The notes under the pieces are model-generated. The model did no database searches, was not told the DNA's origin, and saw nothing but the letters and a program-made list of their open reading frames with translations. The position numbers and the translations under genes were made by a program. DNA of 64,000 nucleotides from Octopus sinensis (lineage: Eukaryota), in assembly GCF_006345805.1 (NCBI RefSeq), contig NC_043006.1:9734001-9798000 (forward strand), given 5' to 3'. Positions 12,522 to 28,905 of this stretch are shown in pieces (position 1 is the stretch's first letter; the number at the start of each line of letters is the position of its first letter).

Positions 12522-14177
12522 TTGCAAGTCATCGATATAAAGGAAGACGATATAAATTACATCGATATAAAGGAAGACGATGTAATAAAGGCCATATATG
12601 AAATGAAAACAGAATCAGCTATTGGCCCCGATGGATTCCCGGCAATCCTCTTAAAAGTATGTAAGAGAGTCCTAGCAAGACCACTGCAGATCCTCTTTCA
12701 GAGCTTCCTTGCAGCTGGCAAACTTCCAAAAAACCTGAAGGAAGGTAAAATATGCCCTATTCATAAAGGTGGTAGCAGAGCAGAGGCCAAGAACTACAGA
12801 CCTATCTCTCTCACCTCACACATCAGCAAGGTCATGGAACGAATAGTCAGAAGAAAACTAATCACCTTCCATGAAGAAAATGACTTGCTGCCTGACACCC
12901 AACATGGTTTCCGACCAGGAAGAAGCTGTTTAACTCAGCTCCTACAACACTATGACTGGGTGCTGAAACAACTGCTCAACCACTCAAATGTGGAAGTCAT
13001 ATATCTCGACTTTGCAAAGGCCTATGATAAAGTCGATCATGGAATATGTCATAAACTGCGTGATCTTGGCATAGTTGGAAAATTGGGAGAATGGCTTCAT
13101 GAATTTCTGAAGAATAGAAGCCAGGTGGTAGTAGCCAATGGGGCCACTTCCATTAACACGCAAATAGTGAGCGGTGCTCCGCAGGGCACTGTTTTGGGAC
13201 CACTACTGTTCATAATGGCCCTCTCAGACATGCCCTCAGCCACGCAGAGAGCCACGATCACAAGTTATGCAGATGATACAAAAGTTTCACAGGCAATACA
13301 GAACCCTGAAGACACTAAGCACCTGCAATGTGAGCTGGACGAAATATACAAGTGGGCTGAAAAGAATAGCATACAGTTCAATGCTGAAAAGTTTCAAGCT
13401 TTATACTATCAGCATGCAAAACTGAATGCAACACCCAATGAATACTCTGGACCCGGAGGGATTGCAATCCCAGAGGCACAATCAGTGCGTGACCTGGGTA
13501 TTCACATGAGTGATGACGCGACCTTTCATGTACATGTTGCTAAACTGGCAATAAAATGTAGACGGCTGGCTGGATGGATTCTCAGAACCTTTAGAACAAG
13601 AGAACAAGAAACCATGATGGTCCTCTGGAGGACACTTGTCCTAAGCCACTTTCAGTATTGCTCTCAGTTATGGTCACCATCCAGTGTCAAGTTGATCACA
13701 GAGCTCGAGGCGATCCAGCGTAGCTACACGAAGAAGATAGCCTCTATGCAGAATGTAAGCTACTGGGAAAGACTCAAGAGATTAAAACTATATTCCTTGG
13801 AGCGTAGGCGGGAAAGATATGCCATAATATACATCTGGAAGATCCTGGAGGGACGTGTCCCAAACTTTGGCATCGAGAGTTACACAAATGCCAGAACTGG
13901 GCGCCAATGCGTGGTGCCTAGGACTCCAAATTTGCCATCAAGATGTAGGACAAGATACTGTGATAGCCTGGGCTTCCGTGGCCCACAGCTCTTCAATATC
14001 CTCCCGAAGAACCTGAGAGACCTGCATGGGGTGGTTGCAGATGTATTTAAAATGGAACTGGATCTCTTCCTGTCAGGTGTCCCAGATGAACCAACGACAC
14101 GGCAGGAGGTGCAGATGAGGGCAGCTGCATCGAACTCTCTCATGCACCAAATGGCAGTTGCTAAAAAGCTTTCGTGA
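12522..14177 (+). CDS. Uninterrupted 551-codon reverse transcriptase ORF of a 5'-truncated LINE (family B); no genuine start codon
   Basis: NYRPISLTS, QHGFRPGRSC, YLDFAKAYDKV, GAPQGTVLGPLLF, YADD at 13266-13277, LYSLERRRER; no stop or frameshift. Confidence 0.9.
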   Translation: MQVIDIKEDDINYIDIKEDDVIKAIYEMKTESAIGPDGFPAILLKVCKRVLARPLQILFQSFLAAGKLPKNLKEGKICPIHKGGSRAEAKNYRPISLTSHISKVMERIVRRKLITFHEENDLLPDTQHGFRPGRSCLTQLLQHYDWVLKQLLNHSNVEVIYLDFAKAYDKVDHGICHKLRDLGIVGKLGEWLHEFLKNRSQVVVANGATSINTQIVSGAPQGTVLGPLLFIMALSDMPSATQRATITSYADDTKVSQAIQNPEDTKHLQCELDEIYKWAEKNSIQFNAEKFQALYYQHAKLNATPNEYSGPGGIAIPEAQSVRDLGIHMSDDATFHVHVAKLAIKCRRLAGWILRTFRTREQETMMVLWRTLVLSHFQYCSQLWSPSSVKLITELEAIQRSYTKKIASMQNVSYWERLKRLKLYSLERRRERYAIIYIWKILEGRVPNFGIESYTNARTGRQCVVPRTPNLPSRCRTRYCDSLGFRGPQLFNILPKNLRDLHGVVADVFKMELDLFLSGVPDEPTTRQEVQMRAAASNSLMHQMAVAKKLS

Positions 14178-14274
14178 AGTAAAACCAAGTAGCAACACCA
14201 AATGGCGGTGCCCCAGCATGGCCACATCTCATGAGCTGAAACTAGAATCAATCAATCAATCAATCAATCAATCA
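12530..14274 (+). mobile_element. LINE family B copy with short 3' UTR and (ATCA)n tail
   Basis: ORF above, 3' UTR 14178-14246, (ATCA)n 14247-14274, then (TA)n; 22-bp duplication at the 5' junction. Confidence 0.95.
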
Positions 14275-16654
14275 TATATATATATATATACAGATTTAAT
14301 ATAATTGCGTCCATGCAAACACTCATACACACAGGGTAGTATGAAATGACACACATAAACAGACACAAACACAAATGCTGTCCTTCGTACATATATAAGA
14401 ATAGATTGTCTGTCACAAATTCAAACCTTGCAGAGAGCCATTCACTCGTTTCTGACATGAATAGCCAGGGCTAGAGGATGATGTACACACATTTTATAGT
14501 CGCTGTATGATATATCAATATGTAGATAAAAAGGAAACTACGAACATATCGTTCAAGGACGAAATGAATACACAACATAAGATGAAATAAAAATATAACG
14601 AACTTGGAATGTGAAAGCAAAAGAGGCGCATCATATATATATTCAGCATCAAAAGCTGACAAAACCTATGAAGAAATAAGAAGAAACAGCAGCAGCAGCA
14701 GCAGATGTGAAGCAGCAGTTGAGGAGTAGAGGGAGGAACTACAACAACAGCGGCAGGGGGGGGTAGATTTTATCTGCATCTAATGAATTAAATTGACACG
14801 TGCTTTCAAATGATAACCTCTTATTTGCTCTTTTTGTAGAAAACAGTGAATGGAAAAGAGTTAGCTATAAAGTGTTTTAGTGTAATTACCAGAGAGCCTT
14901 TTGGGGAATTATATTTATCAAATAATAATAAAGTATTTTTTAAAATCATACGGAATAAAGGAATGAATGGGTGAAGGACATATTGCGATATTACAACTGG
15001 AAAATTCTCTCACTAAAACTGAAATAAAATGTTGTTATTGATCGTTGAAAGTCGAACAATTTCTATACAAATCTTTTTGTTTCCTTTCTTCGTTTTCTTT
15101 TCCTAACATTATGCTTTTATCATTTTCCTTCATTTTCTTCCTTCCTTTTCTTCCTTTTTCCGCGATTAATAACTGAATGAATTCTCGCTTATTTTATTAT
15201 TTTTTTTTTATAAGTAACTCACTTCTAATGTATTAGACAGAACATGAATAAAAATCTTTGTAATATTCAATACGAATGCAATGTTGACAGAAATGTGGCG
15301 TTAGTCTGAAATAGAGTGCGTCAATGAAATGAGGCATTTACTATAGAAATGAGCTGGTATAAAGAACTTCGATAGCGGAACAAGCAATTGGATTAAGAAT
15401 CCTATTATGTTGGGCAGATTTTTAAAAGAAAGCTATTTATTTGACACAACATGAAAGTATAAACAGACAGATTCTATCTTGTTTAATGGAATCGGCATTA
15501 AGATCAGTTGAAATAATCTGCAATGTTTGTTTCTTATTCGTACAATGATTCGATATAAATGGGAAGCGAATGTTTCCAGCGCAGTATATTTTATCTAAGT
15601 CAGTGATTATGTTTTGTTATGTATTTCTTAATTCAAAGAAAACATCTCTATTTTTAAACAACCTCGTCTTTCATTGCCGTTAGATACACATTGACGCCAT
15701 TATTCAAGGTCTACGGAATGAGTCGAATGTTTTCGTCGTTTTAACCATGTTACTATCACTCATATAATCAGAAACATTAACAAACATAATATCACCATCC
15801 CTAGAATAATGTATGATGATTATTGCCACCAGTATAGCAATAAATACTAATAAAATCAGAGTGTTTTTGAAAATACCTTCCACTCAAAGCCGTTTGGCTT
15901 TGGTAGAATCAGTCGATGTTGTGTCGAAAATATATAACATATATTAATGTATTTCGTGGATGAGATCTAATAAGAGCGAAGCATGTCCATTGCTTCTTCC
16001 GACTTACTAATTCTTTCGTATATATCGATTGACTGATATTTCCGCTAATTTTTCTATTTACATTTTCAAAAACACTAATCACATGGATAATATCATATCA
16101 TTGACACTTTCTCACACTACGTTACAAATATTAGACTCTATGTTTTGTGGATTTAGTGTTACAAAATAGCTTGGGATCAGAAATTATTCTTGCTCTATGG
16201 TTAGCATACACATGTTAATCAGATAATCATACTTGTTCTTGGATATTGCGGTGTGTTGCGTCCTGCTGCACAGTACTTCGTTTCATCTTGCTCCAGGCAA
16301 CTCAGCGGTAAATGAGTACCATCCTTGTAACAGTGTAACTTTCTCTCCTTCAAACTGTCTTACTGAGGATATGCTGCATTTTAAATGATACCAAACCACA
16401 CTAAGTCGCGAGAAAAATCAGGCTCTGGTTTTTAATACAGACAATGGAGAAATAAATTTAACATATGTACATTTGAACTGACCACTACAGTATATCATAT
16501 GTCAGAATTCACTAGTTAAAACAAAAAGAAAGTATTATCATTCCTTACGCGAACATCTATTTAGCAATGAGTTCAGACGTCACCCTTTTGAAAAAGCTAC
16601 GAACATGAGTACAAATATAGACATGCACGTCATTTTAAAACTCTTTTTAATTTA

Positions 16655-16927
16655 TTTACTCATTTACTCCGTTATTTCACTGAGGCCATGCTGGAGCACC
16701 GACTTTAGTCGAGCAAATCGACCCGGGGACTTATTCTTTGTAAGCCTAGTACTTATTCTATCGGACCCATTTGCCGAACCGCTAAGTGACAGGGACATGA
16801 ACACACCAGCATCGGTTGTCAAGCAATGCTAGGGGGACAAACACAGACACACAAACACACATACACACTCGCACACACACATGCACACACACACACACAC
16901 ACACACACACACCACACACACACACAC

Positions 16928-21047: not shown

Positions 21048-21108
21048 ATTGATTGATTGATTCTAGTTTCAGCTCATGAGCTGTGGCCATGCTGGGGCAC
21101 CGCCATTT
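21048..21108 (-). mobile_element. 3'-terminal ~60 nt of LINE family B fused downstream of U6
   Basis: AAATGGCGGTGCCCCAGCATGGCCACAGCTCATGAGCTGAAACTAGAATCAATCAATCAAT matches 14200-14260 with one mismatch. Confidence 0.95.
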
Positions 21109-21159
21109 AAAAAATATGGAACGCTTCACGAATTTGCGTGTCATCTTTGCGCAGGGGCC

Positions 21160-21192
<33 letters not shown>

Positions 21193-21210
21193 AATATGTA
21201 CCACCGTAGC
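21109..21210 (-). pseudogene. U6: U6 snRNA retropseudogene (nearly full length, diverged 5' end)
   Basis: Minus strand reads ...TAAAATTGGAACGATACAGAGAAGATTAGCATGGCCCCTGCGCAAAGATGACACGCAAATTCGTGAAGCGTTCCATATTTTTT, the canonical U6 sequence; no upstream promoter context, (TA)n immediately upstream. Confidence 0.95.
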
Positions 21211-21399
21211 TATATATATAATATATTATATATATATATATATAATAATATATATATATATATGAGAAGTTTTGGTATGCAGTAGACCCAAAATGGCAGG
21301 TAAGGCTATATAAGAGCTAAGAAAGGATCATAGTTAGACTACCGGTTCGATAATAGTATGAGTTGGGAGTCTAACGCGGGTCGTATGTGAGCATGTATA

Positions 21400-23933: not shown

Positions 23934-24838
23934 TTCTATATATATATATATATATATCTATATATATATATATATATATATGTTTTATATATATATTATA
24001 TATATATATATATGTATGTAGCTTATCAAGGAGACAGGCATTTGAATAAAGCATTTTAAAGAAGAAAATGATGGAAATGGATAAAAATATACGTACATAT
24101 GTTATTTTATATATATATATATTGATTTTCTGTAGGTAGAATCTGGCAATATGTGGATTCTGTTTGTGTTTCCTTGATAGTATAGAGCGTTTATTTGAGT
24201 AAACATTGATTGACGTAGCAATTTTGGATGGAGTAGGGTGGAGTTTGACATGATATATTTTATTAATCTGTAATATTATTGACAGGTATATGCTCGACGA
24301 ATTGATGTGGCAAGCTGCTCTCTCCTTAATAATTAATCTACAGGGTTCTCACCTATTCACTAGTTTTCTCCGCCATTCGTTTTGGCTCTGGATGTCTATA
24401 TCTTAACTATCATAACGCCATCAATGAACTATTTTGTATCAAACAAGCACAAGCGATGATGTCTGGAACGTGTCTATTTTGTATATACGTGGCAATGTTG
24501 GTTTCTATGGAATACTTGCGTTTAGAAAAAGAAGACACTTTTGGGTTTGTCGTAGCTTAGCCTATACGTTGTTAAATAACTTACTTTTGATATTCTCCCT
24601 GAGGATTATAGTGATTTTGAACATGGAATTTTATTACTGAAATTAAAGTATTGTGTATGGAAACAGCAGTAGATAGAAAAGTTTATGTATGAATTTGAAG
24701 GCTTTTAAATAATAATATCCGTATGTAAAGAGATTGATAGAATAAGTACTAGGCTTCCATAGAATAAGTCCTGAAGCGGATTTCTTCGATTAGCAATCTT
24801 TAAGCGTTAAGACGGTGCACCAGCATGGCCGCAGTAAA

Positions 24839-24906
<68 letters not shown>

Positions 24907-28472: not shown

Positions 28473-28703
28473 TACTCTTTTACTCTTTCTCTTTTACTCT
28501 TTTACTTGTTTCAGTCATTTGACTGTGGCCATGCTGGAGCACCGCCTTTAGTCGAGCAAATCGACCCCGGGACTTATTCTTTGTAAGCCCAGTACTTATT
28601 CTATCGGTCGCTTTTGCCGAACCGCTAAGTGACGGGGACGTAAACACACCAGCATCGGTTGTCAAACAATGCTAGGGGGACAAACACAGACACACAAACA
28701 CAT

Positions 28704-28734
<31 letters not shown>

Positions 28735-28905
28735 CATATATACGACAGGCTTCTTTCAGTTTCCGTCTACCAAATCCACTCACATGGCATTGGTCGGCCC
28801 GGGGCTATAGCAGGAGACACTTGCCCAAGATGCCACGCAGTGGGACTGAACCCGGAACCATGTGGTTGGTTAGCAAGCTACTTACTACACAGCCACTCCT
28901 GCGCC
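28473..28905 (-). mobile_element. Full-length tRNA-derived SINE with internal microsatellite and LINE-like 3' tail
   Basis: Head GGCGCAGGAGTGGCTGTGTAGTAAG; internal (TA)/(TG); 3' GGCGGTGCTCCAGCATGGCCACAGTCAAATGACTGAAAC followed by (AAAAGAGT)n-like tail. Confidence 0.92.

Follow-up and report, generated by a model that had tools for sequence, protein, structure and literature searches.

U6 snRNA/LINE chimeras in the genome of Octopus sinensis: probable by-products of template jumping at a two-hairpin LINE module

A U6 snRNA copy joined to the 3' end of a LINE raises the question of how the two parts came together: in a single retroposition event that left a dead copy, as a member of a small replicating family with a U6 head, or by two insertions that happen to be neighbors. 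Such a unit lies on the minus strand of the 64,000-nt stretch of Octopus sinensis DNA analyzed here (hereafter, the window). We consider it a dead chimeric retrocopy made in one event, with a probability of about 0.75, in which the reverse transcriptase (RT) of a family-B LINE would have copied the tail module of its own RNA and then U6 by a template jump.

The U6 copy and its LINE tail

The U6 snRNA retrocopy occupies positions 21109..21213 (-), as delimited by Rfam, by the sequence and by alignment to a gene of the tandem U6 array described below. Its match to RF00026 (21110-21213, 103.2 bits, E 9.5e-26, model positions 1-105 of 105) is the sole one at the gathering threshold in the whole window. 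In the alignment to the array gene the first ~4 bases are missing. Like the genes of the tandem array, the head is of variant A, with two substitutions of its own (ACGGTGG and CAAAGATG). It closes with the natural terminus, CCATA followed by a run of six T (21114-21109), and to this oligo-T end the 3' part of the LINE and its priming tail are fused directly and in the same orientation. Without any gap, AAAT (21108-21105) begins the 46-47 nt family-B 3' module (21062..21108, minus strand), which continues from GGCGGTGCCCC to GAAACTAGA (21104-21062) and differs by 1 nt from the LINE module at window positions 14200-14246. Fold and covariation place a hairpin H1 at 21105-21084 and a hairpin H2 at 21083-21070, the latter followed by AAACTAGA. 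The unit ends in an (ATCA)3.5 microsatellite (21048..21061), the same repeat that terminates the LINE at 14247-14274 and many other family-B LINE copies. A near full-length U6 on the minus strand, fused to the 3' end of this LINE, is what the original prediction had described, and the description holds.

The family-B LINE of the window is a 5'-incomplete copy on the plus strand. It contains a 551 aa RT ORF (12522..14177; from the ORF list, Pfam RVT_1, E 1e-28), the 3' module found by pattern match (14200-14246) and an (ATCA)n end (14247-14274), and judging from its sequence this element (12522-14274) is of the kind that would have supplied the tail of the chimera. The donor pool is large, with 6004 perfect genome copies of a 27-mer from the family-B tail. 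The tail of the window chimera shows the LINE-type variants AAAT, a CATGAG loop, CTAGA and ATCA repeats; the SINE with the same tail has CAAT, CAAGAG, CTGGA and A-rich repeats, which are absent from the chimera. The tail had indeed been called LINE-type rather than SINE-type from the beginning, and comparison of the tails also confirmed that U6 is joined where the resemblance between LINE and SINE tails begins. The family-B tail is common to the LINE and its partner SINE, the body of which runs into the module in 6/60 sampled tails, and SINE1 has a sister module. Copies of the common tRNA-derived SINE are found in the window at 28480-28900 (-), 16650-16880 (-) and 24720-24850 (+), the third being a fragment. 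They have internal (TA)n/(TG)n and the sister tail module, from AAAGGCGGTGCTCC to GTCAAATGACTGAAAC, followed by (AAGAGT)n-like repeats.

The target DNA adjoining the 5' end of U6 is (TA)n-rich (21214..21275) and the 3' flank begins with ATATAAG, just a few ambiguous bases matching between both sides as a possible target site duplication (TSD). Because the (TA)n of the 5' flank hides any TSD, the insertion of the window copy as one unit rests on recurrence across the genome and not on the locus itself. In other chimeras, read by eye, TSDs are likewise tiny or absent, and many of these chimeras have (TA)n on both flanks. TSDs of small size are what a LINE of this type would be expected to leave (PMC4476161).

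Retroposons downstream of U6 ends

A DNA search of the 2.7-Gb Octopus sinensis genome, with the 166-nt chimera unit as query, gave at least 40 scored places that cross the U6/tail junction at 89-97% identity among 1114 first-look candidates. A tail-unbiased search, with the 34 terminal nt of U6 as its only query and no more than 2 mismatches allowed, located intact U6 3' ends at 387 places in the genome (0 in the reversed control). The first 100 listed ends are all perfect; 28 of them lie in a tandem array, and the other 72 are dispersed and were sampled blind to what lies downstream. Class counts in these 72 copies, and in a sample of 60 tails presented below, combine regular-expression calls with reading by eye.

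The tandem array is located on contig 1 at 141.83-141.96 Mb (G000:C1, L009-L028) and comprises at least 30 genes with spacing alternating between ~1.1 and ~1.4 kb, preceded at ~30 nt by a TATA element and not followed by any retroposon. A TATA element near -30 is also seen, as in the array, at the U6 loci L001 and L006. The working U6 genes are likely to be those of the array plus a few loci preceded by TATA elements.

Among the dispersed ends, the T-run is followed by a tail-only module in 28/72 cases, representing five tail families that each begin at the homologous point. Complete SINEs starting from their own 5' ends account for 23/72, namely the common tRNA-derived SINE in 17 and other tRNA-like SINEs in six (four of one kind and two others). 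Internal SINE or LINE points follow in 8/72, another repeat in 4/72, and nothing recognizable in the remaining 9/72. Overall, ~63 of the 72 dispersed ends (~87%) are fused to retroposon sequence. Within SINE sequence the U6 junctions are bimodal, falling either at the SINE 5' end or at the module boundary, with few elsewhere. The exact pattern of a U6 end, up to 20 nt and a tail start occurs at 57 places in the genome (reversed control, 0), and we estimate that, roughly, some 300 independently made U6/retroposon chimeras exist in it. These counts support the suggestion that in a mollusc a LINE other than L1 takes part in a process like that behind U6-L1 chimeras, and they show it to be very frequent. 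In terms of annotation, most of the dispersed "U6 genes" of this genome are dead chimeras.

Some chimeras appear duplicated together with their flanks, in tandem, inverted or on an unplaced contig (L042/L043, L052/L053, L029/L030, and L072/L073). These pairs are the result of DNA-level duplication, not of retroposition, and would inflate naive copy counts. Three other loci show an inverted partial U6 upstream of the U6 copy (L076, L080, and L110, where the palindrome reaches into the flanks); they are fold-back or inverted-duplication structures and not chimeras. Matches to U1 and U5 correspond mostly to clustered gene arrays with few dispersed copies, and our impression is that chimera formation is specific to U6 among the snRNAs. 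The U1 genes are clustered on contig 15 (28.98-29.18 Mb) and the U5 genes on contig 25 (19.09-19.41 Mb).

The LINE-side boundary and the two-hairpin module

The 60 family-B tails were sampled blind to their context. Besides the six that continue into the SINE body, 31 continue upstream into the LINE and 23 are tail-only insertions, which start at (A)A(A)T/GGCGG, have unrelated DNA upstream and often show (TA)n on both flanks. Truncation elsewhere in the last 110 nt was found in only three of the 31 LINE-attached copies. By extrapolation, insertions consisting of just the ~46-nt module and a microsatellite would amount to ~2,000 of the 6004 perfect 27-mers. Tail-only loci on contig 1 are L122, L123, L126, L130, L131, L137, L139, L141, L149, L151, L153-L155, L157, L161, L163, L166, L167, L171, L173, and L179.

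The module folds into two adjacent hairpins (MFE -18 kcal/mol, z -2.6). In a comparison of 10 tails from five families, three pairs in H1 and H2 show double compensatory changes: the closing pair of H1 is UA, CG, GU or UG depending on the tail, and the stem of H2 is CAGCU/AGCUG, CAGUC/GACUG or CAGCC/GGCUG. Such conservation and covariation suggest that the module is what the LINE enzyme recognizes. The U6 junctions are found 0-5 nt to the 5' side of the H1 base, and this near-constant position on the LINE side is explained because the module boundary is a general hotspot for 5' ends even when U6 is not involved. The original prediction expected independent chimeras to have variable LINE lengths. 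In the genome-wide junction table, junction strings and U6 5' ends do vary, but LINE lengths are near-constant; length is a misleading guide in this case because the LINE-side boundary is fixed independently of U6.

It seems, then, that copying reaches its limit at the edge of the recognized structure, where either the enzyme stops or the template runs out. The hotspot could correspond to a real RNA 5' end, either processed or protected as bound RNA, or to release of the enzyme after copying the structure to which it is bound. A search of window positions 14120-14300 against Rfam (E up to 10) for a known self-cleaving ribozyme or any other RNA family in the LINE tail gave only noise. At L144 and L177 the complete module comes after two or three partial re-copies, in tandem, of its first ~19 nt (AAATGGCGGTGC.CCAGCA), as if the enzyme had jumped back within H1. 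A tentative extension, which we regard as rather doubtful at present, is that the module is itself a discrete retroposed unit of ~46 nt plus microsatellite, whose 5' end, at the H1 base, would be determined precisely by processing of the RNA or by enzyme release. If this were true, the genome would contain thousands of tail-only micro-retroposons, and ready-made units of head and tail would arise whenever the enzyme continued on another RNA. The first step of SINE birth would then be happening continuously in this genome, U6 being the commonest and yet a sterile head.

Independent events and known systems

The original prediction had also proposed that the window unit might be a U6-headed proto-SINE or part of a small family of this kind. 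A master copy of U6 plus tail would be mobilized by the family-B LINE after being transcribed, for example by read-through or from a TATA-like (TA)n on its 5' side. The architecture of head and tail is that of a simple SINE, the junction is crossed at the 40 or more places mentioned above, many copies have (TA)n just upstream, and ACGGTGG together with CAAAGATG is shared by the window copy, L035 and one more place, the only three in the genome with this combination. Against it, at least three of the U6 gene variants present in the genome today are represented among the heads (A, the array type, B, and C), each paired with several tail families and SINEs, and the U6 5' ends are variable: of the 72 dispersed copies, 26 start at position 6 or before, 24 between 7 and 30, and 22 past 30. 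Nearly all junction strings are distinct, with 19 different ones among 20 clear family-B junctions, from T3 to ~T19 and with fillers such as CT, AT or an extra A. L035 and the window copy share two substitutions and a near-identical junction (T7 vs. T6), but their tails end in different microsatellites. The CAAAGATG change itself, a G-to-A at window position 21143 (-) that turns CAAGGATG into CAAAGATG (CAAAG), recurs in no fewer than nine retrocopies, which differ in partner and include heads of types A and C (the window copy, L035, L088, and L181-L186); it may reflect a minor U6 gene variant or a hotspot of reverse-transcription error. Human U6 has a modified G beside this position. In a pattern search of the genome the variants of the window copy occur with the exact family-B tail in the window copy only, and a genome-wide search for shared variants found no expanded group carrying them. 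What is shared with L035 leaves room for a very small lineage or, again, a minor U6 gene variant.

Transcription is a further obstacle. Metazoan U6 promoters are external, and a run of six T is a Pol III terminator. In the window copy such a run sits between the U6 head and the LINE tail, and other copies have T-runs of 3-19. The window copy should be unable to propagate, as the U6 genes of this genome have their TATA box upstream and T6 would end a Pol III transcript ahead of the tail; a transcript started from the head would therefore be devoid of the tail recognized by the LINE. With an external promoter and a terminator before the tail, a U6 head would found no SINE. The large number of LINE-type tails that could act as donors points in the same direction. 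According to Kojima (2015; PMC4494074), a sum of chimeras predicts many LINE copies with a common 3' terminus, and this is what we observe, with 6004 perfect 27-mers and 31 of 60 sampled tails running into the LINE. The proposal of a U6-headed SINE is thus largely refuted by the lack of shared master mutations, the heterogeneous junctions and the terminator ahead of the tail, and we consider it very unlikely. Even less credit, practically none, can be given to two independent insertions, with a short LINE tail landing by chance beside an older U6 pseudogene. It is true that the window locus has no clear TSD and that tail-only insertions are common, but the 57 exact matches and at least 28/72 sampled U6 ends have the module 0-11 nt from the T-run and always in the same orientation (control, 0), and by a rough estimate the chance adjacencies expected in a 2.7-Gb genome are well below one case. 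We conclude that the U6/tail chimeras are independent by-products of LINE copying and not a replicating U6-headed family, because head variants, 5' ends and junctions differ, a terminator intervenes and the donor pool is large.

As to how the two templates were joined, the family-B RT would start at a nick in TA-rich target DNA by priming on the (ATCA)n terminus of an RNA that comes from the LINE, copy the two-hairpin recognition module, leave the LINE template 0-5 nt beyond the base of H1, continue on the 3' oligo-U end of U6 snRNA and stop, in the window copy, ~4 nt before the U6 5' end. If it finished instead at the edge of the module, a tail-only copy would result. Template jumping is probably the simplest reading and matches the proposal for platypus and lizard (PMC4476161). 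RNA ligation beforehand would give the same DNA: mature U6, with its 2',3'-cyclic phosphate, would be ligated by an RtcB-type enzyme to the 5'-OH of a LINE RNA cut at the base of H1, and both parts would be reverse transcribed in one pass. This route has been shown for U6/L1 chimeras (Moldovan et al., 2019; PMC6789731). If LINE RNA had a defined 5' end where the module begins, the tail-only insertions and the fixed junction would both be accounted for, and U6 always supplies its natural 3' end. On the other hand, extra bases separate T-run and module in about a third of the junctions, perhaps in part as donor sequence (CTAAA), the U6 ends are heterogeneous, with one copy reaching ~19 T, and the tail matches no known self-cleaving ribozyme family. 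We therefore favor template jumping and regard prior ligation as improbable, although less so than either of the two alternatives discussed above.

The bases found between T-run and module are C, CT or CTA(A) (e.g., L032, L046, L047, L072, L081, L084, and L113). They may be partly donor sequence, as the SINE reads GACTAAAGGCGG. The copy with ~19 T at the junction (L044, G000:C1:12165647-12165813) is a U6-tail chimera that would fit a U6 with a long oligo-uridylated 3' end at the time of copying.

Under the template-jumping reading, chimeras and tail-only insertions together show, to the nucleotide, where the LINE RT would leave its template, i.e., the 5' edge of the two-hairpin module, and this exit point would mark the minimal recognized RNA. 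For the study of template jumping by a LINE other than L1, and in a host that is not a vertebrate, they form a natural data set. A literature search on octopus, U6 and SINE found no relevant paper on such chimeras in cephalopods.

U6 chimeras of LINEs, among them stringent LINEs and their SINEs, are already known from vertebrates, and the octopus chimeras are of the same type. Doucet et al. (2015; PMC4476161) described U6-L2 and U6-Mon-1 chimeras in platypus, mostly with a 5'-truncated U6 before a short L2 piece and TSDs of 1-9 bp, as well as Anolis U6 chimeras with L1, L2, RTE and AnolisSINE2, and concluded that they are a general property of non-LTR elements. As in those genomes, the octopus chimeras have the natural U6 3' end followed by a short LINE 3' piece with a microsatellite tail, or by a partner SINE; many U6 copies are truncated at the 5' end, TSDs, if any, are tiny, and poly(A) forms are absent. 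They differ in the mollusc host, in affecting ~87% of the sampled dispersed U6 ends, and in a junction concentrated at the base of the recognition hairpin in five tail families, the same point at which thousands of U6-free insertions start.

In the mammalian U6/L1 chimeras (Buzdin, 2002 and Garcia-Perez, 2007, as cited in PMC4494074 and PMC4476161; Moldovan et al., 2019, PMC6789731), U6 is also placed 5' and the LINE 3' in one event, and U6 is also the favored small-RNA partner. Mammalian L1 is relaxed and poly(A)-dependent, the place in L1 at which the junction falls varies, and a full-length U6 is the usual case, whereas the octopus LINE is of the hairpin-plus-microsatellite type, with a near-fixed junction and an often truncated U6. 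The SINEU elements of crocodilians (Kojima, 2015; PMC4494074) similarly have an snRNA-derived head before a retroposon tail, and template switching was invoked for their origin. However, their heads come from U1 or U2, shared internal deletions and extensions reveal master copies, and there is no matching LINE pool; the U6 plus tail units of the octopus show none of these marks of a family and have an abundant pool of LINE donors. A conserved 3' UTR stem-loop with short tandem repeats, common to a LINE and its SINEs, relates our module to the stringent-type UnaL2/UnaSINE1 (Kajikawa and Okada, 2002, as cited in PMC4476161), from which it differs in having two adjacent hairpins and in that recognition is deduced here from conservation and covariation. 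What the octopus adds to these systems is a mollusc host, a high frequency, and a link at the nucleotide level between the junction, a covarying two-hairpin module and the class of tail-only insertions.
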